Shown here in pieces: positions 2-33,741 of a stretch of DNA of 37,976 nt. Numbering within the stretch: the first letter of the stretch is position 1; each line of letters begins with the position of its first letter. The notes under the pieces were generated by a model. The model was given only the letters and a program-made list of their open reading frames with translations. It searched no databases and had not been told where the DNA came from. The stretch lies in contig RHPI01003011.1 of the NCBI GenBank assembly GCA_009103225.1, positions 1 to 37,976 of the forward strand. The letters run 5' to 3'. The DNA is from Chlorokybus atmophyticus (lineage: Eukaryota; Plantae; Mesostigma and Chlorokybus algae). The position numbers and the translations under genes are program-made.

Positions 2-3000
2 TCTGGCGCAGTCATCGTGCGATCTGGCTCAAGCCCGTCAAGCGGTCGCTCTGGAGACGTACTTCTTGAGACTGGTGCATCATGCGCTGGAGATACAGGC
101 AGCATTTTGTTGCAAACAGGCAGCACTACTACTACTGGCCGTGCTGGCCAGTTTTTAGTCCTGATTGGAGGTGCTGATGGCGAGAGCAAACTAACGATGA
201 ACTCGACATATGCGGAAATCACCGTTGCCAATGCTGCACGTTTTGCCGCAACTAGCTTGCACACGACCCTTGCAAGTCCAGTTGGTGGGCTGGTTGGGCT
301 GGCTGATGCTTATGGGAAGGTCCCTGTCAAAGTAGTTGATGGTGCCGTTGTTGTTGATACGCATGAGCTTGATATGTCAGGCAATGTAATAAGCTTAAGT
401 GCTGGTTCAGCAACAGCAATCAACATGAACCACACTCACACCATCATATCTGCCAGTACACTTGGCATAAGCGACGACAATGATGCTGATGTTGGTCTGT
501 GGCTCACCGATGGTAGACTTCAGCTTGCCAGCGCAGGCTCAAAGTCCACCGTCGTGACTGGCGGCTCTCAAGTTGTCATCAACACAACGGTGTCTGGCTT
601 TGACTCTGGTGATATTGAATTGGCCACATCATCAGCACCAACAGGAGCAAGTGGCAGTGTAAGCATTCTGGGTGGAGTTTCGGGTGGCGCAGGAGGCGGT
701 GGTTCCATAGAGGTGGTAGGTGGAAACAGCATACACAGTGAAGGGGGCTCTGTAGAGGTTGCAGGCGGAGGTGGCGCTCGTACTGGTGGGGTCGTTGCTT
801 TGTCTGGTGGTGCTTCCAGGCACGAGACCTGCACCGCCGTGTTCACTTGCCAGAGTGTTGTCGTGACACCTGAGGAGTATCTAGCGATTCAAGAGGGGTG
901 TGACGCTGTCTGCTCGTTTTACGGTGCCTCCTTTGAGCGGTTGTGCGGCAGACAACGTGTGGCTGTTGATGAGGGAACATATGCAGCTGTGCTGCAGGGC
1001 TGCACGCCCGACTGCATGGGTGGCGCGCTCAACTTGGCTGCCGGGAATGCAAACAGCGGATATGGTGGCACAGCCACAATGCGTGGCGGCACTTCGCAGT
1101 CGACTGTGGGAGGCAATGTCATCATCGCCAGCGGGCAGGGTGCTGACGCAAGCGGTGACGTGTTTATCGGCTCAGCGTTGCCCACTGATGCACACGGTGC
1201 ATCTGGGTCAGTCACATTGTCTTCTGCAGATTCCTGCATGGGTACAACGGGTGGCATCAGCTTCACCACAGGCAGCGCCGGTGGTGGTGATGCTGGCAAT
1301 ATTATCTTGACAGTGGGTGCTGCGGACGCCCTAACAAGTGTGCAACTTGGGGACGACAGCGTGACCGTGTCAGTGCAAGACCAAGCACGCTTCCTGGCAA
1401 CAGCTGCAACAACAAGCATCGCTGGTGACAGTGTCAGCATCAGCACAAGGGACTATACAAACTTTTACGCAGGCCCCAGCAACACCACTCTTGAAGGAAG
1501 GCTTATTATCCTGTCGGTCAACAGAGTATCGCATGTGGTTGCCAACAGCAGCGGCACAACTCTTATGGGACAGTCTGTGCGTATTTGCGTTAACAATCAA
1601 ACGCAATTCTTGGCAACCAATAGCAGCACAACAATGTCAGGAGCAGCTGTGTCTGTGCTCGTTAACGGCACTGCCCGTCTCCACGCCTCCGCTGACACAA
1701 CTACCATTCAAGGCCCAGCAGTGGAAGTCACTGCAACATCACAGGATCGGCAGGGAGGATCAGTTGCGGTATCTGGAGGAACGTCAGCGGCAGGAGGTGC
1801 GGTACACATACAAGGAGGGTCTGCTTGGGGTGATTGCGGCAACGGCGTGTACACTTGCGGCAACATTGAAGTGCCGCTGGCTGCGTACTTGGCAATCCAG
1901 GCTGGCTGCGAGGACAGCTGTGTGTTTTATGGTGCAACGCAGCGTCACTGTGGGTCTGGTTACATCGTGGATGAGGACACCTATCAGGCAGTCATGTCTG
2001 GGAGCTGCTCGCAAGGTTGTGCCGCAGGAGTGGTCACAATGACTGGTGGTAGTGCGGAGTCGGCAACTGGCGGTCATGCCATCATACGCGGTGGAAGCTC
2101 GGCCGCAGGTGACGGTGGCTCCATCATCCTGGCATCAGGCAAGGGTGCCGACAGCACCGGCGTTGTGTCTGTTGCATCTGCAGATAATAGCGGCAATGGT
2201 GCAACTGGCGATGTTGTTTTGCGCACTGGCCGGTCTTGCGCTGGAAGTACAGGCGACTTGTTATTGGAGACGGGCAGCACTGACGGCACATCCGGTAGCA
2301 TCATTTTGCTCGTCGGATCTGACGGCGTTTCAAGCAAGAGCAAACTTACTGTCGCAGATGAGATGTTCAAACTCCAACTAGGAGATGCATCTGTTGTGTC
2401 AGCAAGTGTGAACGGCACTTTCATGGGTGGCCTGCAAGATACAGCGGAAGTCACTTTGCTTGACCCTTCCGGGAACAAGCGGGTGCAAGTGCTTGACAGC
2501 GGCAAGGTGTCCATCAACAGCGCCAGTGCTCAGCAGGTGGCAATCCAGAGTGGCGGCTCCGTTTTCATTGAAGCTGCTGCTTCGCAAACACTGTCTCTCG
2601 CTCAAGACGGTTATGATCGCGTGTCCGTGGACACTGGTGGTGGTATTAGCTTGACACCAGCCTCAGGCTCAGGCGTGAATGTCCAAAGCAGTTCAGGGAG
2701 TGCACAGTTCACTGTAAATGCGCTGGCAGCATCGCAAACAGCAACGCTCACAGTAGAAACCAATGCAGCAGATGCCTTGCTGACGTTGTCCGATGGCTCT
2801 GGGTCTGCTTCATTGACATACAGCACTACCGGTGATGGTCTCGTGATTACTGGTATGGAAAAGTCCCTCTGCACAATTGTGGCGGGTGCGGTGACTTGTA
2901 ACACAATGGCTGGGATCATCACGTCGGAGACAACAACATTGGGTGCTGGAGCTACAGAGATCATCACACTAACCAACAGCAGAGTAACAGCTGGCAGCGT

Positions 3001-3169
3001 TGTCGTGGCCACTGTATCCGCTCCTTGCGTGGCCTCCACAACGGACTACGTTTTGATGGCAGTTGTTTATGCCCGAGTATCAGTCAATACCGTATACATT
3101 GCGGTCAAAAACCACGACTCTTTATCATGCATGACAACTTACAAGATGTCATACTACATCATCAACTAG
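2..3169 (+). CDS. Large Gly/Ser/Thr-rich repeat protein (5'-partial) with Cys-rich modules; probably a fibrous, beta-solenoid-like surface or structural protein
   Basis: The frame is open from position 2 (SGAVIVRSGSS...), so the track's GTG start at 17 is not the real start. Stop TAG at 3167-3169. No stops over 3.1 kb. Recurrent GGxVxIxGG / TGxVxLxTG motifs. Confidence 0.85.
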   Translation, partial: SGAVIVRSGSSPSSGRSGDVLLETGASCAGDTGSILLQTGSTTTTGRAGQFLVLIGGADGESKLTMNSTYAEITVANAARFAATSLHTTLASPVGGLVGLADAYGKVPVKVVDGAVVVDTHELDMSGNVISLSAGSATAINMNHTHTIISASTLGISDDNDADVGLWLTDGRLQLASAGSKSTVVTGGSQVVINTTVSGFDSGDIELATSSAPTGASGSVSILGGVSGGAGGGGSIEVVGGNSIHSEGGSVEVAGGGGARTGGVVALSGGASRHETCTAVFTCQSVVVTPEEYLAIQEGCDAVCSFYGASFERLCGRQRVAVDEGTYAAVLQGCTPDCMGGALNLAAGNANSGYGGTATMRGGTSQSTVGGNVIIASGQGADASGDVFIGSALPTDAHGASGSVTLSSADSCMGTTGGISFTTGSAGGGDAGNIILTVGAADALTSVQLGDDSVTVSVQDQARFLATAATTSIAGDSVSISTRDYTNFYAGPSNTTLEGRLIILSVNRVSHVVANSSGTTLMGQSVRICVNNQTQFLATNSSTTMSGAAVSVLVNGTARLHASADTTTIQGPAVEVTATSQDRQGGSVAVSGGTSAAGGAVHIQGGSAWGDCGNGVYTCGNIEVPLAAYLAIQAGCEDSCVFYGATQRHCGSGYIVDEDTYQAVMSGSCSQGCAAGVVTMTGGSAESATGGHAIIRGGSSAAGDGGSIILASGKGADSTGVVSVASADNSGNGATGDVVLRTGRSCAGSTGDLLLETGSTDGTSGSIILLVGSDGVSSKSKLTVADEMFKLQLGDASVVSASVNGTFMGGLQDTAEVTLLDPSGNKRVQVLDSGKVSINSASAQQVAIQSGGSVFIEAAASQTLSLAQDGYDRVSVDTGGGISLTPASGSGVNVQSSSGSAQFTVNALAASQTATLTVETNAADALLTLSDGSGSASLTYSTTGDGLVITGMEKSLCTIVAGAVTCNTMAGIITSETTTLGAGATEIITLTNSRVTAGSVVVATVSAPCVASTTDYVLMAVVYARVSVNTVYIAVKNHDSLSCMTTYKMSYYIIN
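830..1015 (+). repeat. Cys-rich module copy 1 (C-x5-C-x16-C-x3-C-x10-C-x18-C-x3-C)
   Basis: CTAVFTCQSVVVTPEEYLAIQEGCDAVCSFYGASFERLCGRQRVAVDEGTYAAVLQGCTPDC; aligns with copy 2. Confidence 0.85.
1355..1714 (+). repeat. Five exact-length 24-aa tandem repeats
   Basis: DSVTVSVQDQARFLATAATTSIAG / DSVSISTRDYTNFYAGPSNTTLEG / RLIILSVNRVSHVVANSSGTTLMG / QSVRICVNNQTQFLATNSSTTMSG / AAVSVLVNGTARLHASADTTTIQG. Confidence 0.85.
1835..2020 (+). repeat. Cys-rich module copy 2 (C-x6-C-x16-C-x3-C-x9-C-x18-C-x3-C)
   Basis: CGNGVYTCGNIEVPLAAYLAIQAGCEDSCVFYGATQRHCGSGYIVDEDTYQAVMSGSCSQGC, starting 335 codons after copy 1. Confidence 0.85.
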
Positions 3170-14110: not shown

Positions 14111-14696
14111 TTCCCCACCACTTTGGTTTTCAACGTCCTCGTCGAACTCAAGTTGATCAGGCTTGATTTTGAGTAATTGTAACCAGTGAGATGGCAGGAA
14201 ATGACAGGGTGGTGATGAAACTGCACTGCCAGTCTGTCATCAACCAAGCCCACAGTTTTACGGGTCGGGACGTGTGTCCCAGTAAGCTCGAAGCAACTTG
14301 CGGTAGTGCGTAAGATGCCTGTCGGGCTCCCAACTGTTATGTTTCGGGCCATACCGTTTCCATTTCACCAAATAGCAGGTTGCGCGTCCCCGACTATTCA
14401 GCTTATGGTCCAAAATGGTTTCCACCTCGTATTCGAGCTCGGTGTCCACCTCAACCGGTGGTGGTGGAGGCTGTATTCTACCGTCTGAGCGGTATGGTTT
14501 CAACAAGTTCACGTGGAACACGTTGTGTATACGCACACTTGGTGGCAATCGCAGTCGATAAGCGTGCGTACCAACTCTATCAATGATAGAGAAAGGACCT
14601 AACCATCGGGGTAGCAACTTGCGAGCACCCGTACCTTTGATGGTCATGTTCTTTGTATTGAGCAAAACTTTATTGCCGACATCGAAAGTGGGCAGT
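13585..14696 (-). mobile_element. 3' end of a chromovirus (Ty3/gypsy): integrase C-terminus with chromodomain, PPT and 3' LTR
   Basis: FDVGNKVLL...KLLPRWLGPF...AYRLRLP...HNVFHVNLLKPY (GPY/F region); YEVETILDHK...YLVKWKRYGPKHNSWEP (chromodomain); PPT AAAGTGGTGGGGAA at 14111-14124 followed by TGTAGGG. The LTR boundary at 13585 (TGTAAC) is tentative. Confidence 0.88.
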
Positions 14697-14926
14697 TGTT
14701 GGGTCGGGGGAAGTCGAGGGTCACACTGTCTCGGGCCGCGGCAGGGAAAGTCATGCGTGTTGGTCCTGGTGCTGCAACATGGTATAACCTGTGGCAAAAG
14801 TAATTGAAAACCCAGCTTGTATAGCGAGGAGTGCTTGGTGGAGCCGCTCCATATTGCTAAACACGGACATGTGGAGGTGGTGTCTTCCTTAGTATACATG
14901 CTGTGCTGTAGGACACACAGTCAACA
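14697..14926 (-). repeat. 3' LTR of element B (about 230 bp), with PPT AGGGGGGGTGGCT at 14927-14939
   Basis: TGTTG...CAACA termini; homologous to 21822..22053 and 22687..22914 (shared GAGAC-x3-GACCCTCGAC). Confidence 0.8.
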
Positions 14927-17815
14927 AGCCACCCCCCCTGAGCTTCTGGGGAGGTTCCAGCTCCAGAGCTCAGCTGCTAACGCAGCTGAGGAGGGCCGTT
15001 GGCGCGGCAATCGTCGCACCAGTACTCCTCCATGGGTATTGCGTCTACTGGGGGCTCCAGACAGTAGCAATGCAGGCCCTTGTTACATCGCAGAGCATCA
15101 TGAGTGCGTCATTGCCAGCGCTGCCGCAGCGTTCACAGCGTGTGCTGCGGGCGGGGCGAGGGTGCTGGATGCGCGCGAAGCCTGCTACGTAGGGGAGGTG
15201 ACATGGCGCGCAGTTCACCATGTTGTCTTTTAACCTCTCGCCAATATGACCAAGAAGGTCCAGCACTCCTGCGGGGTACACCTTGAGTACCTTGTAGACG
15301 GTGCGGCCCACGGAGGTGTCGAGCGTGTTCTTGGTGGCTGTCATGCGGTAGGCAAAGTCACCTGCTTGAAACCGCCGTTGGCGCTCCTTGTAGAAGCCGC
15401 TTCGCACGCGCTCGTAGCGCAGAGTGTCACGGTGCTGTGCAATGCGCAGGTTGTGGAAGGCCATCGGGACGGTGTGCTCGAACAGCGTGGCACGTGTAGT
15501 GATGTCGTGGTGCATCCAGTGGGGATCGTCGAGGTTGTCCACCACACGGTCTACTTCCTGCTGTGCACGAAAAGGAAGCAACGGCGGACGCCCGAACGGC
15601 GAGTAGTATGGGTTGTACTCGCGCAGCGCCGCCTGCTTCGACAATTGGTAGCCGAGAGCCACCCACGGAAGGTGGTCGTCCCAGGTGTTCTTTCATAATC
15701 CAGCACGTACTTGCGGAGTGCCTTCTTGATAGTCTGCACCGTCCGCTCGGCGAGACCGTCGGCTTGAGGGTGGTCACGCGAAGTACGGCGATGATCGATG
15801 TAACATATGTCCAGCAGGGTGTCAAACTCCCCTCTGAACTCAGTGCCCTGGTCGGTAATGACCTCAGCGCAGCTGCCGTACCGGCTGAGGACATGGGAGA
15901 GGAAAGCTTGAGCCACCCCCCTGCTGCTCTTGTTGGGTAATGGCACCAGCTCCACCCATTTGTAGAAGTGCTCGATTATGACCAGGATGTTGCGGTTGCC
16001 CCGCGCCGAGGGTGCCAAGTCTTTTAAGATGTCGAGTCCCCAGCGGTAGAACAGCTCAGAGATGGGGAGAGGGTGCAAGGTGGCGCTGCGTGTGTTGAGG
16101 CTGGCACGTACCATGTCACACTGCTGGCAGCGACTGACGAACCCCTGCACCTGTTTGAACAGCCCATACCACCAATATTGCGCCCTTACCAGGCTGACGG
16201 TACGCTTGACACCGAAGTGCCCAAGCTCCATGTGGAGGGCAGCGATAATGCCCTCGCGTGTGGCTGGTGTTGGCACCTCCTTGTCCTCGGCCTGGACGCG
16301 GCGGTACACTTTGTCGTCCGCCCACCGGTATTGACGGGTGCGCTGACTGACACATTCTTGCTCTCGTGCACTCTTACTCGAGGGAAGTTGGCCACTTTTA
16401 AGGAAGGAGAGTGATGGCTTGTCTATCCATATGTTCTGCCTGGTGTCGGTGGGTGCCAGCTCGGTGTCATCGACTTCGATGTCGATCGCGTGGACGTCCC
16501 CTAGTGGTGTGGTCACCGTGGGGTTGGTAGCCTCAAGGGCAAGAACCTCCCGGTCGTTGAGGTGGTGTTGATCTGGCGCCCTGACCGTAACGTGGCAGCA
16601 GCAAACATGGCCGCCATGGTGGGAGCTGCTTCTGCGGGGCCGAGCTCGTGCTAAGCTCCGGTTGCATCGTTGGTACTGCGGTGAGGGTTGCGACTGAGGC
16701 CATCAGCGTCCTGGTTGGTGAGGCCGGCGCGGTGGTCGATATCAAAGTCATACTCCTGAAGTAACAGGGCCTAGCGAGCAAGTTTCCCTGTCAGATGTTG
16801 GTTGGTCATTAACCACTTGAGTGGCTGATGATCGGTGATCAGTTGGAATTGTCGACCAAAAAGGTCTGAAGAAGAAGATAGCCCATACTGCAGCGAGGCA
16901 CTCACCCCCCTCGTAGCTGCTGTAGTTGGCCTCAGCGATGTTGTTGCTTCGGCTGGCGTACGACACCACCCGCTCCTTCTTGTTCTCATTGTGCTGTACC
17001 AGCACAGCCCCCATCCCAAGTTTGCTCCAGTCGGTGTGAAGGAAGAAGGGCTTGTTGTAGTCGGGACGTTGCAGGATGGGAGCGGTGGTGAGCCTGCCCT
17101 TTAGCTCCTCAAGTGCCTGCTGTTGTGGCCCCTTCCACGCAAACTCCACCTCCTTCTTCAGGAGCTCGTTGAGGGGTCGCGCGATCTTTGCGAAGTTCTT
17201 CACGAACCGGCAATAGTAGTTGGCAAAAGCCAGAAAGGCACGCAGACGCATAAGGTCTGTGGGAGCAGGGATAGCCGCCAAAGCCTCCACCTTTGCCTGC
17301 TGTATGTACACACCGTGGGGCACAATCATGTGCCCTAGGTAGGGTACCTTGCGAGTGAAGAAGGTGCACTTGTCGGGGTGCACTGTCATCCCCACCCCCT
17401 TGAGTCTCTCCAGCACTTCCTCAATGTGTTGCAGGTGCACGTCGTTACTGCGACTGAAGTTGAGAATGTCGTCAATGTAGCATCGCGCGGAGTCCGGCCC
17501 CTTCAAGGCTTTGTCCATGACGCGCTGGAACTTGGCAGGAGCGTTCTTCAGTCCGAAGGGCATGACCTTCCACTGGTACAGCTGCCGGTTGCCCCAGATT
17601 GAGGTCTTGTGCTTGTCCTCCTCCTTGATGGCAATCTGGTTGTACCCTTGTCGCATGTCCAGGATGCTGAAGACGGTACAGTCTCCTGCATTCATCAAAG
17701 ATACCCTATGCATTAGGCATTTTATAGCTATCTTGTTTGGTTTGTTGTGGAGGGGGCGAGAGTCGCCGCACATACGCCGATCTGTCCAGTTGCCTGCAGA
17801 ATCCTTCTTCTTTAC
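14697..17815 (-). mobile_element. Ty3/gypsy element B (RT, RNaseH, integrase, PHD finger, PPT, 3' LTR), degenerate, abutting the chromovirus integrase
   Basis: RMCGDSRPL, LDMRQGYNQI, MPFGLKNAPAKFQR, CYIDD (YIDD at 17468-17479), LHTDWSK, HMELGH...CQQC (HHCC), WGLDI...VITDQGTEF...ERTVQT (DDE), and a PHD at about 15007-15140 with a small frameshift. Confidence 0.93.
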
Positions 17816-18610
17816 CGCACTGTAGCCTCCGTTCAGCATGCGTATCCACCCCCGAAAGATGGCCGCGAACCCCATGGCCTGCATCACTCGGTCCAGCAAC
17901 GTCAAGTCCAGCCGGTCGAACGCCTTCTCAAAGTCCAAGAGCAAGATCGCCACCTCCTGCTGCGAGGACTCCGCACAGCTAATGGCATCCAACGCGGTGA
18001 GCACGTTGTCGAGGATGTAGCGGTGCTTCACGAAGCCCGTTTGCTCCACAGAAAGCACCTCCGACAACAACGGTGACAAGTGAAGAGCCAACGCCTTAGC
18101 TAGGATCTTATAGTGGATGGGCAACAAGTTGATGGGGCGCCAGTTACGAAGATCACCCAATGCACCCTTCTTGTGTAAGAGCACAATGATGCCCGTGCGC
18201 TGCGACGCACCCATGCTACCTCGACGCAAAATGTCTTGGCAATAGGTGGTGTAATCAGCACGTAAGACAGGCCAAAGATGCTGCCAAAACGCAGCAGTTA
18301 AGCCATCTTTGCCAGGGCTTTTATGCGGGGACATGGCCCGCAAAGCTGCATGCAGCTCGACCATGGAAACCTCCGCATTGAGGGTTGCGCTCTCCTCCTC
18401 CGAGAGTGCGGGTGCGATAGCTTTCACACACATGTCTAGTGCAGCAGCTTTCTCCGCGTCCACCGGGGAGGATGTGTAGGGGGTGTGCGTAGAAATCCTT
18501 GGCAGCCTCAGAAAGCGAGGCTTGCAAGGTGAGCGGGGGGTCGTGAGCCTGCAGTGTGTAGCTGAGCTCGAGCAAGGGGGCTGCCACTCTGTCCGCCCGT
18601 CCTTTGGCAA
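16748..18610 (-). pseudogene. Chimeric open frame: N-terminal half of a LINE RT fused in frame to a gypsy RT and RNaseH start
   Basis: KSPGKDGL, WRPINLL, QTGFVKHRYILDN and LLDFEKAFDRLD are non-LTR motifs. After NGGYSAV the frame reads KKKDSAGNWTDRRMCGD...YIDD...TDWSK, which are Ty3/gypsy motifs. Confidence 0.9.
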
Positions 18611-20830
18611 AGAACGAGAGGCTCATCCGCTCGCCTTCCAGCCTCCAGCGGCTGCTGGCTCGGATGAAGCTGCCTTCCAGCGCGCGGCTTTCCAGCTCGT
18701 CCAAGGTGGCGTGCAAGCGGTGACAAGCCGCTTGCGCACCTGCGTTGATGGGTGCGTAACACAGTGCCTGTTCCGCCGCTGCGAGGAGGCTGCGACTGAT
18801 TGCCTCGTTCTGCGTGCGAGCACTGCGAATTCTAGTGGTGTGCTGCTTGGCCAGGGTAGCAAGGGCGTCAATGCCATCTTCGAACCAGTCCACAAACGAC
18901 GGGGAGGAGTGGCGTAGATGTTGCCGGTGCACCCACAACTGTTCCGCATCGGAGCAAAAAAAGCTATCCTTTAGTAGGGATGGGTCCAGCTTCCAGCAAC
19001 CGGGGCCGCGAGGAAGGGAGCACAAAGAGCGAAAGGAGAAGATAACCGGGAGGTGATCGAACATGGTCTCTCCAAACTTAACTTCCGAAGTCAGCGTGTG
19101 CGTACGCAGGGAGATGCTAGCATAAATCCGGTCCAACCTAGCTGCTCTTCTCTCATTTCCCCCTCGCCAGTTGCTCCGTGTGTAGCATACATCGTCGGGG
19201 TGGAGAATGCGGTGAGTGTCCTCCACTTCCAGCGCCGCCGTGAGGTGGGAGAAAGAGAGGGGAGAGTAGGCCGAAAGCAGAGTAGAGGTGTGCAAACGGT
19301 CTAGTGGTGCGTCCTCCACGAAATTCCAATCCCCTCCGAGTATGCAGTAATCCGCTGAAGGCAGAGCTGCAGCCAAGGTGGAGAAGAAGGTAGATCTGTC
19401 GGACTCGGTGTTGGGTGCATACACCGAGGCGATGAGGAGCAGAGAGCCCTCCCAATGCAGCCTAAGCCAGCAACAAGGAGCCGGGGCGCAGGTGCCGTGG
19501 TCGACAACATGCTGCTCCCAGCGTTTGGCATACAATATCGCAACCCCGCCTTTACTACCATCAGCGAGAGACCACCCCGAGCTGCCCGACCAGCAGGCAT
19601 CCGACGATGTGCCTAGCTTGGTTTCTTGAAGTAAAACAAAGAGGTTGTCCCCGTGTCCCCAGGCACGCAGCCGTCGAAGTAAAACCGCTCGTTTGCTTCT
19701 TCCGAGATGCGTTGCCGTTCCCCCCAGCCCGCGCACATTCCATGCGCATACGGACAAGGCGGTCCTCATGGGGTGGAGCGCGAAACGTCCTCAGGCTGAA
19801 GCCCAGTAGTTCCGCGAGGGAGACGACCTGGGTATCAGCTGGGGACCAGCGCAAAGCATCCTGAAGCGAGGTGTCTGCGTTGCAAGGCAGTGGCAGAAGC
19901 TGCTGCGCTTGCGCTCGAAGGAGACGGAGAGCGGATGCGGTGACGGGCCCAACAAGCGCGTCCATACCACCCTCCACGTGTGCCAGCTTGCGCACATTGA
20001 CCCACACCACGTTGCCTCCCTCCGCTGCTAGCAGCATCTCCTCGAGGGAGATCACCCAAACCACGCATTGCTGCACCCCCTCCTCGCGGAGTAGCAGCGT
20101 GCTGGAGGCTGCGCTCCATTCCTCCCAAGGGACGTCTACCGAGAGCTGGAGCAGGTCTGCTGCCAGACGTCGCAGCTGCACCTCTGTGGCGCCCTCCCCA
20201 GAGCTGGCCAAACCAAAGGGAACGGGTGAAGGAGCTGTGCATCTGCCAAGGCCCAGCCACCATTCACCATCTTGGCAGCGGAGTACGGCCATGAGCGCGC
20301 GCACAGCTCGTGGGGCCGTGGCCTTGACAGGTAAGTGGAAGCCTCCGGCCAGTTTCTGAGAGTGGGGTGTGGGTTGGGTGGCCTCCGCGCGTGGAAGCAC
20401 CGGCTTTGGAGGAGAGAACAACCTCCTTTCCACCAACTTCTGCCCGGAGGAGATTGCGGACGCAGGGGCAACTGGAGCATCAGTGACTGGTTGGGGGGAG
20501 ACCAGCTGCTTGGAAGGCGTCAAGGAAGGTGAGGCCTAGCGCAATGCGTCCGGATGCCCTGTCGTGCAGAGATTCCGCCCATGCAGTCACGGTGGCCCAA
20601 CGATGTGTGTCCGTGAGTGTCATGGTAAGGGTGGAGGCCATTGCGGGGAGCACCACCAGCAGGTACAACTTGTTGTGCCTCTTGCCGTTGCCTCGCACCG
20701 CAACAATGTTGGACAGGGCGCGTGAAGGCTCCAGCTCCTCCGAGTCCGATGCCAGCGGGTAGCCAGTCGCAGTGATGGTCTCGCACAGACAGCTACTCAG
20801 CCAAGACTCAGAGTGAGGAGAGAGGGACGG
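17816..20830 (-). mobile_element. L1/Tx1-type LINE fragment (ORF1 C-terminal region, APE endonuclease, RT N-half), truncated at both ends
   Basis: ORF 18321..19769 has the APE motifs WNVRG, LQETK, SVYAPN, GGDWN, RLDRIY and DHLPV. A frameshift near 18480 leads into the RT. Homologous to the LINE at 25784..33854. Confidence 0.9.
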
Positions 20831-22053
20831 CAGCGAGGGAGTAGCCCAGGCTTTCCTCTCCCATGTACTCGGACGCTGTGCTAGAGTCATCACCGACCGA
20901 GATACGGAGTTCAGAGGAGCCTTCAACAAACTCATGGACAAATGCTTCATTGGTCATCGCCGCACTTCCACAGGCCGATGGTCTCGCTGAGCGTATCGTG
21001 CAGACCATCAAGAAGGCTTTGCGCAAGTACGTCCTTGACTACGAGAAGAACACATGGGATGACTACCTCCCATGGGTAGCACTGGGGTACCGGCTGTCCA
21101 AGCAGGCAGCACTGCGGGAGTACAGCACGTACTATTTGCTGTTTGAAAGGCAACCATTGCTCCCTTTTTGCGCACAGCAAGTTGTCGACAGAGTGGTGGA
21201 CAATCTTGACAACCCCGACGAGATGCTGTATGACCTAACAGTGCGCAGCGCACTGCTCGAGCACACTGTCCCTATGGCCTTCAACAACCTGCACATTGCT
21301 CAACACCGCGACACGCTTCACTACGAGCGTGTGCGCAGCGGTTTTTACAATAAGCAAAAACGCCGCTCCTAAGCAGGAGACTTCGTCTACCGCATGGCGG
21401 CCACACACGACACCCTCGACACCTCCGTCGGGCGCACTGCTTATAAGGTATTGAAGGTGTATCCCACAGGGGTACTGAACTTTCTGGGACAACAAGGCGA
21501 CCGCATGAAGGACAACATGGTGAACTGCGCGCCGTGTCATCTTCCCCACGTTGCTGGCTTCGGCAAGATCCAGCACACGCGACCGCTGCGAAGCATCCGC
21601 TGCGAGAAATGTGGCGGTGCCGACAACGACCCGGTGATGTTGTTATGCGAAGGCTGCAACCATGGCATGCACTGTGACTGCCTTGACCCTCCATTGGACA
21701 AGATGCCGCTGTGGGAGTATTGGTGCGCTGCGATGACTGCTGCATCAGCGGTCCCCCACACAGTCGGTTAAAGCTGAGTCCTAGAGCAGGAGGCTACCCC
21801 AGAACTTTAGGGGGGGTGGCTTGTTAACTGTGTGCACTATAGCACAGTAGGTACAGTAAGGAGGAAAGCGTCACCAGCTCTACAACTGACCAATCCTCAC
21901 ATTGGTTCATCCCCGAGCCTATGCCTATGTCTAGGGGGTTCTCTTTGTTTGTGTTGTTCTAGTGCTGCGCGCAGCACCATCATGCCCACGGCATGAGCGC
22001 TCATTTGCAGTGTGCCCGAGACGGCGCGACCCTCGACCATGGTAGGCACGACA
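20831..22053 (+). mobile_element. Gypsy element B' (diverged copy of B): integrase core, PHD, PPT and 3' LTR
   Basis: ADGLAERIVQTIKKALRKYV...; CEKCGGADNDPVMLLCEGCNHGMHCDCLDPPL...YWC; PPT at 21809-21821; LTR 21822..22053. Confidence 0.9.
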
Positions 22054-23214: not shown

Positions 23215-24887
23215 TGAGCGTGTGAGTCAGCTGAAGGCGCACGAGGGCATTGGCGCTCAGCTGCACGGGGTGGTGACACGCATCTTTAATTGTGTGTGTC
23301 TACTATGTGATGAGAGACAATGCATGAGACAGCATGACATGGTCTCATGGTGTACAATAGCATGCAGACATGCATGATAAGGTGGTTTACGACGAGTTCA
23401 AGCCACGATGATGGAAGGCATGACACGTTGTTGCTACATTGGTGCTGTTGCTGCTACAGCTTGTCCCAAGGTGGCATGGCTTTCTCATCACGACAACACT
23501 TGTGTCGTGGCGACAGCTGTCATTGTGCCGTAGTTGTAGCTGTACTGTTTTGCTGGCTATGCTGCGGACTGCAGCCAGCTGTATTTGCGGCTGCTCCCGC
23601 ACAGTCGTTGCAGCAGGAGCAGCATCGTTGCTATCATTGTTTTCTTTCATTAATGTTGACATTTGTTAACGTCTTTGCTGCCTTACTGCTGTTTGTTGCT
23701 GTTTTTGTTGTGCCTTGTGAAAGCATTCCCCCCTCCCCCCATCTTCCCACAATAGGTGCCGGAAGAGCCGTCCAGGTGCCAGTGGCCGCCTACCATCGCT
23801 GGGAGGAACGGCCGTGAAGACTATGACAAGCGCACTTGGCAAATTGCTGATTATGATGTTACAATTTCAATAGCTCATAAAGTGTGTACACGCACAGCTT
23901 TTGCGCATGACTTTTTGTATAACACTTTGTTTGTACAGCCGTGCGTGCATGTGTCTAACTGCGTGTCCGACTTAGATTCTTGTGTGTTTGCTTGCTACAG
24001 AAACTTCCACAAGCATAAATAGCAAAACTAACTTCTTGCGCACACGCAAGCGCACCGCATTCACATGCGCAAGCACATGCACACCGGCATGCGCGTGCAA
24101 GCAAGCATGTGCTCTTTGTAATGCATGCATGCACATACACAAATTATAACTGTGATATTTATGTGACATGCTTACTACAACCATTTGGGCATAGATTTAT
24201 GGCATCTGCCTTATAGGCTGCTCTGACCAGTGCAGCCTACGAGTTGCTATTGGCGGGCTTATCACTGGCTCATAGACTGCACTAACCAGGATTAGGGTCG
24301 CATGCAGGTTGCGGGCGTGAAGGGAAGTGTGGCATGAAGGCAGAGATGACGGAGCAGCTCTGCCAGCACCTGCAGCGTTGGCAATTGCATCACAACGACT
24401 ACAGTTGCGGTTTTCAGCAATGATTGTGCGGAAGACGCGCAACTGGCGGCAGACGCTGCTGCAGCTGCTCTCCCCCCCCCCCCCCNAGGGAGTTGGTTGA
24501 GCTGGAAGGCTCCATCTTGTCGTTCCCCTCCTCCTCCTCCTCCTCCTCCTCCTTGGCTACGCCTACCGAAAATCTCACCAAACCTACCATCCCTCCAAGA
24601 TCAATGCCAACGACAATGTCCTCTTCAACAACGTCCACACACCCCGCCTTTCAGGTGCTGCAAGCATTCCAGTGCATGTTTAAGAAGACACACATATGCC
24701 TGCGTGCACACACATCGGGCCACCACACTTGTGCACATGTTATGACGCACATGCGTGTGCACGCACAAACATGCATATGCATGCATGAGCTCACAATGCT
24801 GCCTCTTTCCGTCATGCAGCATCCAGAGCTCTTTTGTGGGCGCAGGATTGGGGGCTGGTGCGACGAGGTGCAACAGCTGAACCGCAG

Positions 24888-25783
24888 GTGAGCGGAGGGG
24901 AAAGGGTGAGGAGGATGTGCGCACATACGCATGCGCACGCGCAAGCGTGCCGTGCATTACTGAGCACAGTCATGCGCGGTGCAAGCGTGCATGCGCTTTT
25001 CATCAGCAGGCATGCATGTACACAAGTACACACAATTGTTTGTTACAGTCGGCTCATAGGCGGCACAGTCCAGTGCGGCCTATATGGCAGTTTTGCGTGT
25101 ACACATGCATGTGAACAGGGTCCCCCTCCCCCCNTCCTTGAAGAGATGCGCACGCACACACATACAAGCATGAACACCCGCACTCGCGCACACGCAGGTA
25201 CGCGGACTGCCCCCCAAGCTGGCAATCAGCAACCCGGTGCTAAAGAAGAGAACTTTGGAGTGCACGGCTTGTCAGCGCAAGCACTATCTCGCCATAGCTG
25301 CTCGTGCTGTCCATCTCCATTTTCAACGTCCCAAGGTGCGACGAGCGTGTGTGTGCGCATGCGAATGCGTGCGTGTGTGCATGCGTGCGCATGTTGTGAG
25401 ACATTGCTCATACGTAAGTGCGTATGCAAACACTTACGTTGGGCTCATGGACCGCATTCCACAAAGGTATGCGCATGCAAGCATGCAAGTGCTCTCTGTC
25501 ACACACGCGTGTGCACACATACACACACTTGTTGGACTTCTACCTACTATAATGCCTCGTAGGCTGCACTGTTCAGTGCGGCCTGTAAGGCAGTGCTTAC
25601 GGGCTGGCTCGTAGGCTGCAGTTACCAGTGCGGCCTATGAGCCAGCAATAGCTGGTCAGAATAAGTCATAGGCGGCAATCTAAAAGTGCCAGCTGTATAG
25701 ACAGGCCTGCATACATGCATGTGCGCAAGTGCATCCATTCCTTTGTATGCACACACACATGCAGTCGCTAACAATTGCATCCT
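24888..25783 (-). repeat. Right (inverted) copy of the ~2.1-kb non-coding element, part 1; the copy continues at 33855..34985 after the LINE
   Basis: The reverse complement of 25100..25535 aligns with 11455..11905, and that of 24888..25025 with 12040..12144. Confidence 0.75.
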
Positions 25784-25927
25784 GGGCGGCGGCTAGGAGG
25801 GGACGTCCTTGGCGGCGGAGGGGGTGACGTAATGGGGGGGTGGGGTGGGGGGTAAGGCTGGTCCCTTACCCCTGGTTAGGGGGGCTCTCCAGCCCCACCT
25901 GATCCGGCGGTAGTTTGCCCGCTGCGC

Positions 25928-26437
25928 TGCAGCAGCTGGTCAACGCAGCTGACTTTTTCTGGTGCAGCTCCTAAACGCTGCACCACGTGGAGACCATAGC
26001 CATGGTGGCTGCTGGTGATCAGGGGCAGGTCCCCCTTAACTCCTCTCCTACCTATGGAGGACTTCCCTTTCCTCGGAGGCGTCGTCCATGAGCGACCAGG
26101 AGCGTCTCTTGGTGTTCCAATTCTGGACGAGCCCGTGCTCAAGCCCACTACATGGGCGGATGCAGTGGCAGGCGCCCCTCGGNTGCAGCAGCTGGTCAAC
26201 GCAGCTGACTTTTTCTGGTGCAGCTCCTAAACGCTGCACCACGTGGAGACCATAGCCATGGTGGCTGCTGGTGATCAGGGGCAGGTTCCCCTGACTCCTC
26301 TCCTACCTATGGAGGACTTTCCTCCCCTCGGAGGCGTCGTCCATGAGCGACCAGGAGCGTCTCCTGGTGTTCCAGTTCTGGACGAGCCCGTGCTCAAGCC
26401 CGCTACATGGGCGGATGCGGTGGCAGGCGCCCCTCGG
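25928..26437 (+). other. Tandem duplication of about 255 bp joined by a single N (26183); probable assembly artefact
   Basis: 25928..26182 is repeated at 26184..26437 with a few substitutions. Confidence 0.7.
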
Positions 26438-29088
26438 CAGCCACCCCTCCATTCTCTCAACGGCATCGAGGAGACTCTCTCAGGGAGTCCCACTCTCACA
26501 GCTAAGTTGATGGCTAATCTTGCACACGCTCCGGGCATCATTGCTAGCACCCTCACCACCACATCCGCATATGCTATCTCACTAGATGAGCGTGCGTGTG
26601 AGCGGTGGCAGTCAGTTTTAGAGCAGCGAGCACTAGTGTTTAGATTCCGATACACTCAGACATTAGAGTCACGCTTGACATGGATAGAAGCTTTGAGTGC
26701 ACGCCACCCGGCTGCCCCACTGATTGCATCAGTGCACTACACACGGGCGGGGGAAATCCAAGCACTCTTCACACGGCATCCAGCACAAAGCACGTCCTTG
26801 CCCTTGCAGAGCAACGTCGCTTGCCCACGCTGTTGGGCAAGCCAGTCACGGTGCTTCGTTGGAGCGAGGGCGGTGACGACGACAACTTCTGGGTCTCCTT
26901 CCAGGGAGCGCATCCTCGAGTCCTTTTCTCTCTCTCTCTCTCTCTCAAGTCCTTTCTCCGTATGGGCAGCTTGGCGATCCCCTGCGCTCAGCCGCCTCCG
27001 CTTCCCGCTCGTTCACCACACCATCTATGCGCTTTTGCTTCAAACGCAAGGCAGGTGCAGTGCTCCCCCCCTCCGTGCTCATCAAGTCCGTGTCAGGAGT
27101 GGAGCCTCATGGAGGTGCGCATCATCACCCCCCAGACACCTCCCACCTGCTTCCGCTGCAAGCAAGTGGGGCACTTGCGCAGTCATTGCACGGCGCCCCT
27201 CCCAGCGTCAACGGCAGCACAGCCAGGCGCAGCTCCCCCCGCAGACCAGGAGCCGCTTCCCCCCCTCAACAACCTCCCAACCCCCCGCCCAACCAACCCC
27301 CCACTCACCCACCTGCTGCAACAATCAGCACCCCCCTTCTCNNNNNNNNNNNNNNNNNNNNNNNNNNNNNNNNNNNNNNNNNNNNNNNNNNNNNNNNNNN
27401 NNNNNNNNNNNNNNNNNNNNNNNNNNNNNNNNNNNCACACCCTCCGCCAGCGCTTTGTGCGCAGACCTTGCCCTCGACCTCCAGCAGCTGCCTCGCATGA
27501 CTGCTGATGGCCCAACCCAGCAGCAAACGCTGGAAGGTTGGCTGGAGACCAAGCCTCCGCCGCTGCGCGCAGAGCACCCTCCTCCCTCCTCGCGTGTGGC
27601 TCCGTATCCGTCACCCTCAAAGCTGTGGTGTGACGATCAGGATGAGGAGGATGACCTCCCGCCAGCCCCGCCTGCTGGTGGGATGGTCCCCTACGACCAT
27701 TCAGTGCAAGCTGCTCGCACAACCCAGGCTGATCGCCATCCCCAACAGCGTCTCTGGTTGGGAGAACTGCTTGAGGATGCGGGTTTCAAGCCTTCTTCTT
27801 CACCATAGGAGACGGCGTTCATCGTCCCCGTGGTGCTTGCCAACGCAGGGGACTCCGCTGACTGCTTGTCCCTACTTCTCACGGACACAACACAACGCAC
27901 CACGGGGCTGCGTATTGGCAACCTCCTCCCCTCTGCGCAGGGTGAAGCTGACGGCATGCAACATTGTTGCTCCATACTGCGGGCAACGCTGGAGCAGGCC
28001 GGTGTGTCACTAGACGCCACCAGGGAGGACGCTGAGCATGAGTCGTCTGTCTCAAACTCAAGCCCACTCGCAGGGGGCACGCCATTGCATCCGTGCCTAT
28101 TCGTTCTTTGCCCACTGCTTCTTCCTGCCGAGGCATGCCACCAAGCATCGGCGCAGCAGCAATGGGTGTCCTTGTCGGAGTGGCAAGCCCTGGCCCACAC
28201 CAAACTCAGCAAGCACGGCAAGCCTCGCATCACACCCTTGATGATAGCCTCCGCGATGCGCACATGGTGGGAGCAACATGCACGCACTCCGCTATCATCA
28301 CCGTCTCACCCCTCCTCCTCACACACGGACTTCTCGGAGTCTCCCTACACTACCCCTCGCCCACACCACCCCGCAATGTCCGCCTCCCCATCCCAAATGG
28401 ACAGCTCCTCCGTTCCCCGCCTCCCTCCCCATCCCATCATACACCCTTCAAGGAGGCTTCCCCCCCGTCGGTGAGAAGAAAATTGCAGCTCTCCCCGTCA
28501 CACCCCCCTCTCCCCGCAATCACCACCACCCCTTCGGAACGACTTGCACCCCACCTGCATGCTCTGGCAGTCCTGGTGTACAAGTATGCGGCCCAATGCT
28601 GGCGGCTGGGTCTGGTTCGCCAGAACGGCGACAAGCTAGCAACCATCCCGGCTACCTTGCCAGCGGACCCCTCCCCCTGCGACCATGGTAGGCAGGCGCG
28701 GCGGCTGGCTTCGGCCATGCTGGGCGTCCCCGAGTCTACACATTTTACTCCAAGCCCGGAGCTCTCATTCATACAAACGGCTGCAGATGGCATGCCATAC
28801 CATGTTCACACATGGTTGTGGCACGACGAGGAAGTAATGTCACAACCCCCCAACACCTCAGGCGCGCAGGATGTGCTGTGGGTTGATCCACTCCTTGTTG
28901 AGGGCGTTGCGGGAGGCAGCCACGACCTCGTTGAGGCACAGGTGCTGGAGGTGTTAGAGCACGTTTCTCACTTCACCGCCAACACCTCCGCTCAGCACCC
29001 TTCTTCATGTCCGTCATGGCCTTTGGCTGGCGGAACCCCTCCTCAAGGCGTGCCATATTCTTGGGAGCGGGTGTTGGGCCTTGACTGA
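26243..29088 (+). pseudogene. LINE ORF1 region (RNA-binding region, zinc knuckle, two Nudix-like domains), frameshifted and containing a 94-N gap
   Basis: Pieces lie in ORFs 26243..27808, 26680..27507, 27830..28474 and 28093..29088. The TAG at 27806-27808 is followed by in-frame coding sequence. The true start is not determined. Confidence 0.75.
27342..27435. other. Assembly gap (94 N)
   Basis: Run of N. Confidence 0.99.
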
Positions 29089-32000
29089 TGCAAGTGTCTT
29101 CAAGTCTCACGTCCACGCTCTCCGTGTGGACGTGGAATGTTCGAGGCATGAACGGCAATCAGTCAAGCTTGGCAGGTGCATTTTCGCATGGTCGGCGTCG
29201 CATATCGGCAATCACCCGCTTTCGCTTATGGCCTTCGTCGAAGGATGGAGTCCTTCTTTTGCAAGAGACCAAACTAGGAACGTCACCAGCTGCCCATGGA
29301 CGGCGAAATGTTGTTGGCGAGGCCCGAGTGTGTGGGCCCTGCGGAAGGCACACGCGGGGGGGTGGCAATCCTGTGCCCACCAGCTTGGCAGGACTATATC
29401 ATTGACACAGGCGTGGCCGTCCCTGCTAGATGCTGCTGGGTGCATGTTCGTTGGTTTGGTGGAGTCCTTCTCCTCGCCAGTGTGTATGCACCCTCAAACT
29501 CGCGAGAGGCCAGAGACCTTTTCTTCTTTGCACTCCCCTCTCTCCTCCCTCACGCGGATTGATATTTGCCGGGTGGTGACTGGAACTGTGTGGAGGATGT
29601 GGATGAGGATCGCTCTCGCCATGGTAGACTCTTTAGCATGGAAGACGCAGGTGCTCTTCATGCAATGGTGGGGGAGATGGACTTGCATGATGTGTGGCGC
29701 AGCTGCAACTCTGGCATGCGCGCCTTCACTTGGGACAACAGGCGTGAGGACAAAGGCCGCAGGCTTGCGCGCCTTGATCGGTTTCATGCTTCCGCCTCTC
29801 TCAGTACTTTCTTTGACAGCTCTTCAATCCTGCAGGAGGAGTGGCTATATGACCATAAGCCAGTGCGTTTATCTATACGCTCTGGCTCGGATGTGGACCA
29901 GGGTCCGGGCTTGTGGAAGCTCAACCCCGCTCTTCTAAAGCGTTCTTCTTTTAGGGCAGAGTTGGAAAGTCTGAAGCAGCTGCACCGGCTTACCTCTCCG
30001 CACTCCGGGCAGGCCTACATACGATGGTTTGAAGCTGGGCTTGCGAAGGTTGCCATGATGGCGCGGAAGCACTGGCACACTGTACGGCAACAACACAACA
30101 TGCAGCTACATCATCTGCAGGACCAGCTGGGCAGATGTGAGGCGGCGTTGTCTGCTAGTCCTGGAGACACAGCCATTCAACTAGAGCACTCCCGTCTGCT
30201 GACTGATCTAGGTGCACTCTCTGGGGTATTGCAAGAAGGTGCTGCAATACGCTCAAGTGTCCGCTGGCGTCTTCAACGGGAGCGGATGACCTCCTTCTTC
30301 TTTGCCGAAGGCCGCTCTTACACTCCTGCACACGTGCTTCTTTCTGTCACTCATGCCCATGAGCTTTTGCCAACACCGGTGACCAGCAATAATGGTTTGT
30401 TGGACGAGGTCTCAGCATTCTACCACAAGCTATACACCTCCTCGCCCTCCCCGCCAGCAGCAAAGGCAGCTGCAGCCCGACAGTGTTGGCAGGCATTGGA
30501 TATGAAGGTCTCCGCTCAGGTCTTGGAGTCTTCGGTGACGCTACTTGAGTTGCACGCTGCACTACAGAGCATGCCCCCGCACAAAGCCCCAGGCAAGGAC
30601 GGCCTCACCACGGCGTTCTGGCAAAGTGCATGGCCTCTCTTAGGGGAGGATTATTCTCTTTACTGTCAGCACGTTCCAGCGGAAGGGCAATTGGGTGAAG
30701 CTCAGTGCGAGGGGGTTATCCTCATGTTGCACAAGAAAGGAGAACAGTCTGACCTTTGCAACTGGCGGCCCATCACGCTGCTGCCCACCCACTACAAGAT
30801 TCTGGCAAAAGCTCTAGCAGTTCGCGTGGCGCCTGTGCTTCCTACGGCAGTCCACCCGTTGCAGGTAGGCTTTGTGCGCCACCTGTACATCTTGGACATG
30901 TGCTAGTGGCCCTGGACGCTATGCAGCATGCTGCACACACAGGGCAGCGCGGTGCTCTTATCTTGCTAGACTTTGAGAAGGCATTCGACCGGTTAGACTG
31001 GCACTTTCTAAATGGCGCGCTCTCGCATTTGGGCTTCGGCCTAACCTTTCGGCAATGGGTACGCATGATGAATGGGGGGAGCTGGAGCTCGGTGCTAGTG
31101 AACGGCCACGTGTCTTCTCCCTTCGCTCTGCACCGCAGTGTAAGACCGAGCTGTCCATTGGCTCCCTCTCTTTTCACCCTTGCCATTGAGTATTTGGGTG
31201 CTCTCCTCCGCATCACCCCTAAGGTTGAGGGCATACGGCAAAACTTGGATGAACTGCAGGACGAGGCCCACGAGCTGAAGTACAAGGATACGCGGACGAC
31301 ACGGAGGTCTACGTTGCTCTTACCCCGAGCAGCTTCCACGCCCTTCGCCGAGAAAGTCCTGGACCTGTATTGCTTGGCCTCGGATTCCAGTCTCAACCTG
31401 AGGTAGTAAAAAGGCATTCTTCTAGGTCCTCCCTCGGATCCCCCCCCCCCGGACTGGGAGGTGCATTGGCTGTCAGCAGGGGAAGCGGTCTCTCTTCTTG
31501 GTGTCCCCATGGGGATTTCTGTCCACCAGGAACAGCTATTTACCGAGGTGATAGCCAAGATGCGGCGCAAGCTTGAGCTATGGTCGCGCCAGCAGTTATC
31601 CTTGGTGGGGCGGGCTCGGACAGCCAACCAGACCGTCCTGTCATGTCTCTGGTATCTAGCAGCGATAGCCTCTCCCCCGGCGACAGATTATAAACAGCTA
31701 ACCGCCAACNCCCCCCCCCCCCCCCCCCCCCCCCCGAACTGAGGGATGCATTGGCTGTCAGCAGGGGAAGCGGTCGCTCTTCTAGGTGTTCCCGGCATTT
31801 TTGTCCACCAAGAACAGCTATTTATCGTTGTGATAGCCAAGATGCGGCGCAAGCTTGAGCTATGGTCGCGCCAGCAGTTATCCTTGGTGGGGCGGGCTCG
31901 GACAGCCAACCAGACCGTCCTGTCATGTCTCTGGTATCTAGCAGCGATAGCCTCTCCCCCGGCGACGGATCTCAGACAGCTGACCGCCAACTGCAGGGGG

Positions 32001-33741
32001 TACATATGGCGGCATGACCCTGAGCAGCGTCCCAGAGGCGGGCAAGTTGACTGGCCCACTGTTTGCTTGCCCAAGCGGCTTGGGGGCCTAGGGGTGCTGC
32101 ACCCGACATGGCAAACCACGGCTTTACTAGCCAAGTGGGCTGCCCGCTTGATGGACCCAACATGGGCGAAATGGAAGGTGCTGGGCTTTCATCAGGTTGA
32201 CATGTGGGGCACTGAGCACCTCCCCTCACGGACAGGCCTTTCTCGCTTAATACGCTGGGTACCTAAAGGGGCGGCCCTTTATGCTGTCGGCCTGCCCATT
32301 CGACCTTCCGGCGCAATCATCTTTCAGGCGTGGATGCAGGTCCGCCCTGCTGCGCCGTCACCAACAAACTTTGATGAGGTTTTGAGACAACCTCTCTTTC
32401 ACAATGCACACGTTGTGGACGCGCTCGGCCAGGTGGTGGGTGGCTTTCAGCCTTCCAGGCGCTACTGGCGACACTGGGCAGAGGTAGGCTTTCTCGCGGT
32501 GGCAACGCTTTGGGATAGTGTCCTGCGTCGGCCATATCCGGCTTCTACCCTTGCACTGTGGGTGCCCTTGGATGCTAGGGCGGAAGAACACGCAGCCGAG
32601 CTGTGGAACCTCCTCCCGGCAGCTTGGCGCCTGCTGCTGCACGGCGGGAAAGGGTTTCCTACTGTTGGAGAGTGGTGGGCCTTCTCACTCCTAATCACAA
32701 GATCAGTGCGGCACTGCGTGCAGGGTCCACACACGGCCAGCTCTGCACCGGCTTGCTCTTTCCTCTTATCGGCGATGAGGGAGACATCCTCGCCCCTCCC
32801 TCCTCGTTCACAACTGGCATCTTCACGTTGCAGCGCATCTGGGTCCTTTAAGAGCCTGTGCGCTGGCAAGGCAAGCTCGCCATCGGCTCCCCGGCATGAT
32901 TGGCATTGCCCGACACTCAACGCTACCTGGGGTGGCATATAGCGGGGGGAGCTCCCTTGCACATGCTCCACATGGACCCGGCATTGTCTGTATGGGGAAC
33001 GCAGGCATCTTCCCCGCAGCAATCCCTCTTACTATGGGATTACACGGTCAGGTTCGGCTACACCCTCCTCAGCACAGCGCACGCACATCAGGCGCCCGCA
33101 TTGCGCCGATGGGACCCTGAGCAACACCCTGTATCGTGGCCAGCTCATTAATCGCGCCTGCACAAGACACCCTTGGCGGCCAAGCACCGTTCTTTCTTAT
33201 GGCTACTGTCACACTGGGCATTGCACTCAGGTGACAGGCTTGCGAAAATGAACTTTTCTGGGGAGTGTATGTCATGCTCTCTGCAATGTCTTGAAACTCC
33301 CGAGCACCTCTTCCTTCGCTGCTCGCTGGTCCGTGCAGTCTGGGCTTGGGTCTGTGCTATATAGAGACGCCTTGGCGGCTTTTTTCCCCTCTCCTTTTCC
33401 CATCTCCTGTTTCACACTTCGTTTCCTAGTCCTCACACACAGCTCCGTCCGGCGTGGTTGATTCTCTACGCATTGACTCTCTGGCACGTCTGGGTGGCCA
33501 GGTGTTCGGTGATGTACTCAGGTTCCTCCCCCTCTTCAACTGTTATTGTGTGCTCTCTCGCTTCCAGTGTTCAGGTTCTGGCCAAGGAGGAGTGGCTTCT
33601 AGTCACGTCCTCGCCACAGGAAGACATTTGACTTGCTCCTTTCACAGCCTTCACGGACTCGTGGGCTCGCCACTCTATCCTCTACTCTACAGCCTGGGCT
33701 TCCCCTCTTCCTCGGATACACTGGCATACGCTAGATACTAG
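29088..33741 (+). pseudogene. LINE ORF2 (APE, RT, C-terminal zinc-binding domain), with multiple stops and frameshifts
   Basis: ORFs 29088..29405, 29296..29562, 29566..30906, 30756..31406, 31746..32942 and 33173..33364 carry the motifs in order. Confidence 0.9.
31441..31991 (+). other. Tandem duplication of about 270 bp joined at an N (31710) and a poly-C run; probable assembly artefact
   Basis: The segment HWLSAGEAV...KQLTAN occurs twice (ORFs 31461..31742 and 31746 onward). Confidence 0.7.

Follow-up and report, generated by a model that had tools for sequence, protein, structure and literature searches.

The ORF1 proteins (ORF1p, encoded by open reading frame 1) of long interspersed nuclear elements (LINEs) form the least understood part of retrotransposons without long terminal repeats (non-LTR retrotransposons); the accessory domains of these proteins give hints on how the RNA particle is assembled or shielded. 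The plant-type (type I) L1 ORF1p combines an RNA-binding region with a CCHC zinc knuckle. Among Nudix proteins, CFIm25/NUDT21 is a non-enzymatic member that binds RNA. Here we describe the ORF1 of a LINE on the plus strand of contig RHPI01003011.1 of Chlorokybus atmophyticus (assembly GCA_009103225.1), an early-diverging streptophyte alga. The window is the whole stretch of 37,976 nucleotides (nt) that was analysed; the element spans about 26.2 to 33.4 kb of it.

A five-type classification of ORF1 is mentioned in PMC4120745. The esterase is an ORF1 accessory domain of CR1/L2-type elements (PMC3905857), and retrotransposon accessory domains are reviewed in PMC6338049, in which the word 'Nudix' occurs zero times. 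The Chlorokybus ORF1 resembles these described cases (PMC3905857; PMC6338049) in carrying extra globular domains on an RNA-binding ORF1 protein, conserved within a LINE lineage. It differs in that those domains fall in recognisable families, whereas the two modules found here, A and B, do not.

Among the closest described systems is the plant-type L1 ORF1p. The Chlorokybus element shares with it a putative CCHC knuckle in ORF1 and, in ORF2, an L1-clade APE endonuclease, reverse transcriptase (RT) and zf-RVT. In contrast, its ORF1 continues for more than 400 further codons after the knuckle, with two orphan modules that match no Pfam family. To our knowledge none of the ORF1 types described so far has such a tail. 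This is an ordinary LINE of the L1 clade, with an ORF1 that appears to be of the plant CCHC type, and its novelty is the orphan two-module tail, which is real, conserved and without known family, while its fold is unproven. On balance we lean towards reading positions 27809-29088 as the C-terminal, roughly 430-codon ORF1 tail of an L1-clade LINE, made of two modules with Pro-rich linkers, non-catalytic, and with B possibly derived from a Nudix domain. Such a tail is a clear lineage-specific ORF1 innovation near the base of the land-plant line. The original prediction, made from the nucleotide sequence, had described a LINE with a tandem pair of Nudix-like domains after the knuckle. Two globular-looking modules do lie between the knuckle and ORF2; the Nudix assignment fared less well, being borderline for B and unbacked for A. 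The features on which the argument draws, including the counterparts A' and B' in a second LINE on the minus strand, are as follows.

26243-26700, plus strand: N-terminal part of ORF1 of the plus-strand LINE, in frame 2, taken from the ORF list and its translation.
27145-27192, plus strand: putative CCHC zinc knuckle in ORF1; it is in frame 1, unlike the N-terminal part and module A.
27342-27435, no strand: assembly gap of 94 N inside ORF1, across which the frame relation is undefined.
27806-27808, plus strand: premature TAG in the frame of module A, directly 5' of the module, seen in the translation.
27809-28300, plus strand: module A, 164 amino acids (aa), frame 2, an alpha/beta-looking orphan, defined by its open frame and homology to A'.
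28301-28533, plus strand: Pro/Ser-rich linker in which the frame switches from A to B, with a poly-C run near 28460.
28534-29007, plus strand: module B, 158 aa, frame 1, an orphan, defined by its open frame and homology to B'.
29086-29090, plus strand: TGATG overlap of the ORF1 stop (B frame) and the ORF2 start, read directly from the sequence.
29088-33364, plus strand: ORF2 of the plus-strand LINE, with APE endonuclease, RT and C-terminal zf-RVT, broken by several frameshifts and containing an assembly-join duplication.
20483-20836, minus strand: module A' of the minus-strand LINE, lacking the first ~40 residues, defined by similarity to A.
19873-20322, minus strand: module B' of the minus-strand LINE, in a frame that differs from that of A', defined by similarity to B.
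18321-19769, minus strand: ORF2' of the minus-strand LINE, with APE endonuclease and linker (Pfam Exo_endo_phos, E=2.2e-9).

ORF2 fixes the clade of the element. The best PDB sequence match of the plus-strand ORF2 is human L1 ORF2p (E=1.2e-12), with R2 reaching only 8e-3. Together with RVT_1, which was found in the same ORF2, and zf-RVT at 33173-33364 (E=1.3e-10), this match places the plus-strand LINE in the L1 clade; its ORF2 has the arrangement typical of that clade, an APE-type endonuclease at the N-terminus and an L1-like RT after it. The start of the plus-strand ORF2 (MQVSS...WTWNVRGMNG) aligns with the start of the minus-strand endonuclease at 42% identity, and identity between the two ORF2s is 35% over 284 residues. 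Because their ORF2s are only 35-42% identical, the two LINEs represent anciently diverged families.

Module B lies within an uninterrupted ORF (28093-29088). Its stop codon, TGA at 29086-29088, overlaps the ORF2 ATG at 29088-29090, which shows that the B frame is where ORF1 really ends. The tail is part of ORF1, lies ahead of ORF2 with stop and start codons overlapping, and is conserved across diverged L1 families. Unlike the TGATG of the plus-strand element, the B' frame of the minus-strand LINE lacks a stop at the ORF2 ATG, running on for about 200 nt over the ORF2 start (19561-19769, minus strand).

The knuckle upstream follows the pattern C-x2-C-x4-H-x4-C. Pfam zf-CCHC matches it at residues 156-171 of the translated piece 26680-27292 with E=0.0035 and 17.8 bits, below the gathering score of 20.8. 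It had been taken to be in frame with A, which does not hold: the knuckle is in frame 1, and the 94-N gap between the two leaves their frame relation undefined.

Conservation of the tail was judged from one copy per family, that is from the two LINEs of the window, with A, A', B and B' handled as separate pieces. A and A' give a Smith-Waterman score of 67 against 30.3±5.4 for shuffled sequences (z about 6.8), a score reached by 0 of 2000 shuffles. B and B' score 47 against 29.3±4.8 (z about 3.6, p 0.005). The similarity is clearly beyond chance for A and modestly so for B. In the second LINE, A' and B' follow one another as A and B do, directly upstream of the APE start. The motifs W.LGL.R, RRLA and V.WV, which B had been said to share with the other LINE, are indeed found in its counterpart B', and the peptides quoted for the two modules in the original prediction are all present in the translations, at the positions given there.

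The other LINE also keeps part of A, as had been proposed, although the pairing given for it does not stand. The peptide LYLLVVL...TMTLTDT of A' had been matched to the first strands of A and is out of register there; its real partner, LFVLCPL...QQQWVSLSEW, belongs to A's C-terminal half (BLASTP E=0.001). A' is partial because the minus-strand LINE is 5'-truncated near 20836, where it meets a piece of gypsy integrase. In the ORF at 20480-20950, which had been read as an A-like start, the first 38 aa are gypsy integrase sequence read in antisense (tblastn E=2e-6). The integrase fragment itself, on the plus strand at 20837-21372, adjoins the truncated end.

These scores have to be weighed against the alternative that the region is not functional coding sequence at all, but a set of chance-long ORFs in C-rich, GC-rich DNA whose similarity between the LINEs is residual or compositional. 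Long ORFs do occur here in several frames and on the opposite strand, the plus-strand copy has a stop and frameshifts, and off-frame comparisons of B reach scores of 50-54. However, those off-frame pairs join non-equivalent positions or stay within their own shuffles, whereas in frame B and B' align colinearly for about 115 residues, a stretch that takes in W.LGL.R, Q.RRLA, the W strand, EE and V.WV. For A, a score of 67 for the proposed frame pair compares with 41 or less for every other sense or antisense pair, and the proposed pair also leads all 2000 shuffles. The B frame also ends exactly at the ORF2 ATG. Finally, neutral sequence would not stay alignable when ORF2 identity has fallen to about a third, which argues that A and B were long under constraint. 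We consider a non-coding origin highly improbable.

The comparisons instead show that A and B are true coding sequence, inherited from the ancestor that at least two L1 families, now at 35-42% ORF2 identity, have in common. GC content by codon position shows a low second position in B (0.70/0.46/0.65), B' (0.77/0.50/0.67) and the RT region (0.62/0.43/0.65) alike. Retention in two diverged LINEs argues for past purifying selection, as the original prediction had suggested and as the scores of both module pairs beyond their shuffles are consistent with.

The two modules had further been described as lying in frame across one premature stop. The TAG before A is there, but the modules differ in frame (2 for A, 1 for B), which also requires a change of frame in the linker. 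Module A lies within an uninterrupted ORF (27830-28474), with the A-frame stop at 28472-28474. The shift from A to B is -1 in the plus-strand LINE and +1 in the minus-strand LINE. The frame change in both copies, in a minus-strand LINE that is otherwise fairly intact over this stretch, would fit an arrangement in which A and B reside in separate polypeptides, whether because an additional ORF lies between ORF1 and ORF2 or because the linker undergoes programmed frameshifting. Set against this, shifts in opposite directions are better explained by independent, random indels in a homopolymer-rich linker than by a conserved recoding signal, and a start codon context for B was not identified. We regard separate polypeptides as improbable, and treat A and B as parts of a single ORF1 tail.

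The plus-strand copy is dead. It cannot make the protein because of the stop before A, the frame change between A and B, the broken ORF2 frames, the assembly-join duplications and the assembly gaps. Its value lies in the family, not in the locus.

The original prediction assigned both modules to the Nudix fold. The Nudix box has the consensus G-x5-E-x7-R-E-U-x-E-E-x-G-U, and its catalytic glutamates are missing from all four sequences. At the aligned position, A reads R-A-T-L-E-Q-A-G-V, A' C-E-T-I-T-A-T-G-Y, B R-L-A-S-A-M-L-G-V and B' R-L-A-A-D-L-L-Q-L; the remnant of the box comprises only R, G, a hydrophobic residue and at most one Glu. Searches of Pfam, NCBIfam and PHROGs with A, A', B and B' returned no match even at E<=10, neither to a Nudix profile (Pfam PF00293 or related) nor to any other family.

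More sensitive comparisons used a reference of 11 annotated Nudix genes of E. coli K-12, which were aligned and built into a hidden Markov model (HMM) and profile. The analytic per-sequence P of the HMM is 0.012 for B, 0.064 for B', 0.11 for A and 0.14 for A'; the empirical P is 0.035 for B and 0.49 for A, the latter no better than shuffled sequence. When 161 E. coli ORFs were ranked with the B profile, nudE came 2nd and nudI 8th (Mann-Whitney p 0.036), while the A profile gave no enrichment of E. coli Nudix proteins (p 0.86). Global profile alignment with hhalign gave 5.9 for B against 2.3±1.9 for column shuffles (p 0.07); for A, 97% of the shuffles scored at or above the observed value. The tests on B are not mutually independent. 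Locally, the best hhalign match of B to the Nudix profile is a pair of C-terminal strands (P 0.15). That of A is the Nudix-box helix, with ILRATLEQAGVSL, the degenerate Nudix-box-like stretch of the module, lying on VVRELQEEVGIT (P 0.11).

Two further lines of evidence concern both modules. NUDIX is the sole named Pfam family among the ESM Atlas neighbours, in 13 of 30 clusters for A (score 0.92) and 4 of 30 for B (score 0.95), at shared-feature counts of 132/256 (A) and 118/256 (B), values at which the tool expects distant relatives or chance hits. With MAFFT --add, A, A', B and B' all align along the Nudix domain from one end to the other, and both the box helix and the C-terminal W-V strand fall in register; this register is forced by the method, which imposes colinearity.

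On these data A and B might both be degenerate Nudix folds that together make up a tandem pseudo-Nudix module, with which ORF1p would bind RNA, cap or nucleotides. The ESM Atlas neighbours, the position of A's best local match exactly on the box helix, the MAFFT placement and the borderline profile results for B speak for it. Against it stand the null results for A in the HMM, global alignment and rank tests, the chance-level range of the shared features, the lack of a Pfam NUDIX or fold match, and the forced register. In addition, no similarity between A and B could be detected. This last result leaves the 'tandem pair' of one domain type unsupported, and the idea that A and B are duplicates of each other was rejected for the same lack of mutual similarity. 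We consider it rather unlikely that both modules are Nudix folds. Taken singly, B may be a degenerate Nudix fold, a tentative assignment that we would place somewhat short of even chances, and for A the Nudix identity is a lead only. A recent capture of a host Nudix gene was rejected because the HMM would still detect it.

The Nudix homology clan has non-enzymatic members, as PMC5389931 states. If B (and A) were Nudix-derived, they would resemble these members in the loss of the catalytic glutamates and in a binding use, with the box helix and W-V strand in register. They differ from them in giving no HMM or structural match and in having borderline profile statistics for B alone.

Structure prediction leaves room for another fold. 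AlphaFold2 (AF2) models built from two-sequence alignments reached a predicted local distance difference test score (pLDDT) of 34 for A, and of 54 for B with a predicted template modelling score (pTM) of 0.53, both too weak for a fold assignment. In B, the model places strands at residues 8-17, 22-29 and 35-40, a helix at 48-63, strands at 79-82 and 88-97, and a helix at 131-153. We take this beta3-alpha-beta2...alpha order and its spacing to resemble MutT. A Foldseek search of the B model against PDB and BFVD gave no match at E<=1e-3 and no Nudix protein, and a wide VIA-align search was uninformative with so weak a model. The AlphaFold and Foldseek check proposed along with the original prediction could be carried out in this form, and it neither returned a Nudix match nor fixed an alternative fold.

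A and B may instead be lineage-specific ORF1p domains of another fold, for instance RNase H-like or another alpha/beta fold of three strands and a helix, with the Nudix likeness a convergent pattern. The null results for A and the model of B are compatible with this reading, as the borderline profile scores of B are with a Nudix origin of that module, and we regard another fold as possible, if doubtful. RNase H itself was tried as an identity for B and rejected, there being no catalytic pattern, no HMM match and a low Z. If neither module is Nudix, the tail offers an orphan fold worth solving; if either is a dead Nudix fold, a nucleotide- or cap-binding scaffold joins the known ORF1 repertoire.

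Searches for relatives beyond the two LINEs gave the same picture of an orphan tail. A PDB sequence search with single sequences and two-sequence profiles found nothing relevant for A or B, a word-index search of 5.8 billion protein clusters with the A and B ORFs was blank, and so were metagenome and viral-contig scans for both modules. A full HMMER search of 1.84 billion (1.84e9) representative proteins with the B profile found no genuine relative. Its lone match, a repeat protein hit through a short Leu/Arg/Ala repeat of the LLRRLADG type, was dismissed as spurious.

ORF2 reached further. A protein search through ORF2 found 7 distant metagenomic LINE fragments, and an endonuclease scan gave 17 distant metagenomic LINE loci (25-36% identity), in the flanks of which A- or B-like sequence is absent. 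Among these loci, two distant, L1-like LINEs from JGI metagenomes show other ORF1 architectures, each without A- or B-like modules: the 441-aa ORF1 of L012 (71-1396) contains an RRM-like segment together with a long coiled-coil-like repeat rich in Lys and Glu, and L019 (564-4286) has a single 1240-aa ORF in which an acidic N-terminus is fused to APE and RT.

A literature search found no paper that ties Nudix domains to LINE ORF1 and no family described for the modules. The paper on the Chlorokybus genome contains no discussion of LINE proteins in its main text. The modules had been put forward as undescribed, which agrees with the lack of any paper or database family for them in these searches.

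As for function, the tail consists of two unrelated-looking alpha/beta modules of about 150 residues each and ends in the TGATG overlap with ORF2. A and B are probably non-catalytic, since neither keeps the Nudix glutamate set or another recognisable active site. They would most likely work in the ORF1p-RNA particle, where they could add RNA or nucleotide binding beside the CCHC knuckle, or mediate self-association or the binding of host factors. The flexible Pro-rich linkers would join the modules. A more specific proposal is that this ancient L1 lineage of an early-diverging streptophyte alga carries two catalytically dead, Nudix-derived ORF1 modules that bind cap, nucleotides or RNA, or act as decoys for a nucleotide-based host defence. 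We think this unlikely; if true, a Nudix-type domain would be reported for the first time in a retrotransposon protein.

Several other features of the window surround the two LINEs. The endonuclease ORF of the minus-strand LINE (18321-19769) is intact, and its RT is interrupted by a Ty3/gypsy chromovirus with gypsy RT, RNase H, integrase and chromodomain at 14258-18610. Here, a 620-aa ORF (16748-18610, minus strand) runs from the N-terminal motifs of the LINE RT in frame into the Ty3/gypsy RT and RNase H. This join is a nested insertion with the frame kept by accident, and the gypsy integrase, SH3 and chromodomain continue to 14258.

Near the start of the window, an intronless ORF of 1050 aa (17-3169, plus strand) has no Pfam family other than a weak Cupin_3 match (E 0.035). 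Two local tandem duplications affect the plus-strand LINE, at 25919-26182 / 26175-26437 and at 31440-31709 / 31725-31991. Their copies are 90-96% identical with a spacing of 255-285 nt, and a single N adjoins each (26183 and 31710). The first duplicates the ORF1 start, that is the first ~200 nt of the N-terminal part, and the second an RT segment. Both have the appearance of overlapping contig ends left unmerged at scaffold joins, and not of a biological feature. Directly upstream of the LINE, CA/TG-rich, microsatellite-like DNA at 24800-25600 gives rise to long spurious ORFs rich in Cys, His, Thr and Ala on both strands. Across the window the GC content is 50-61%, as in GC-rich eukaryotic DNA.

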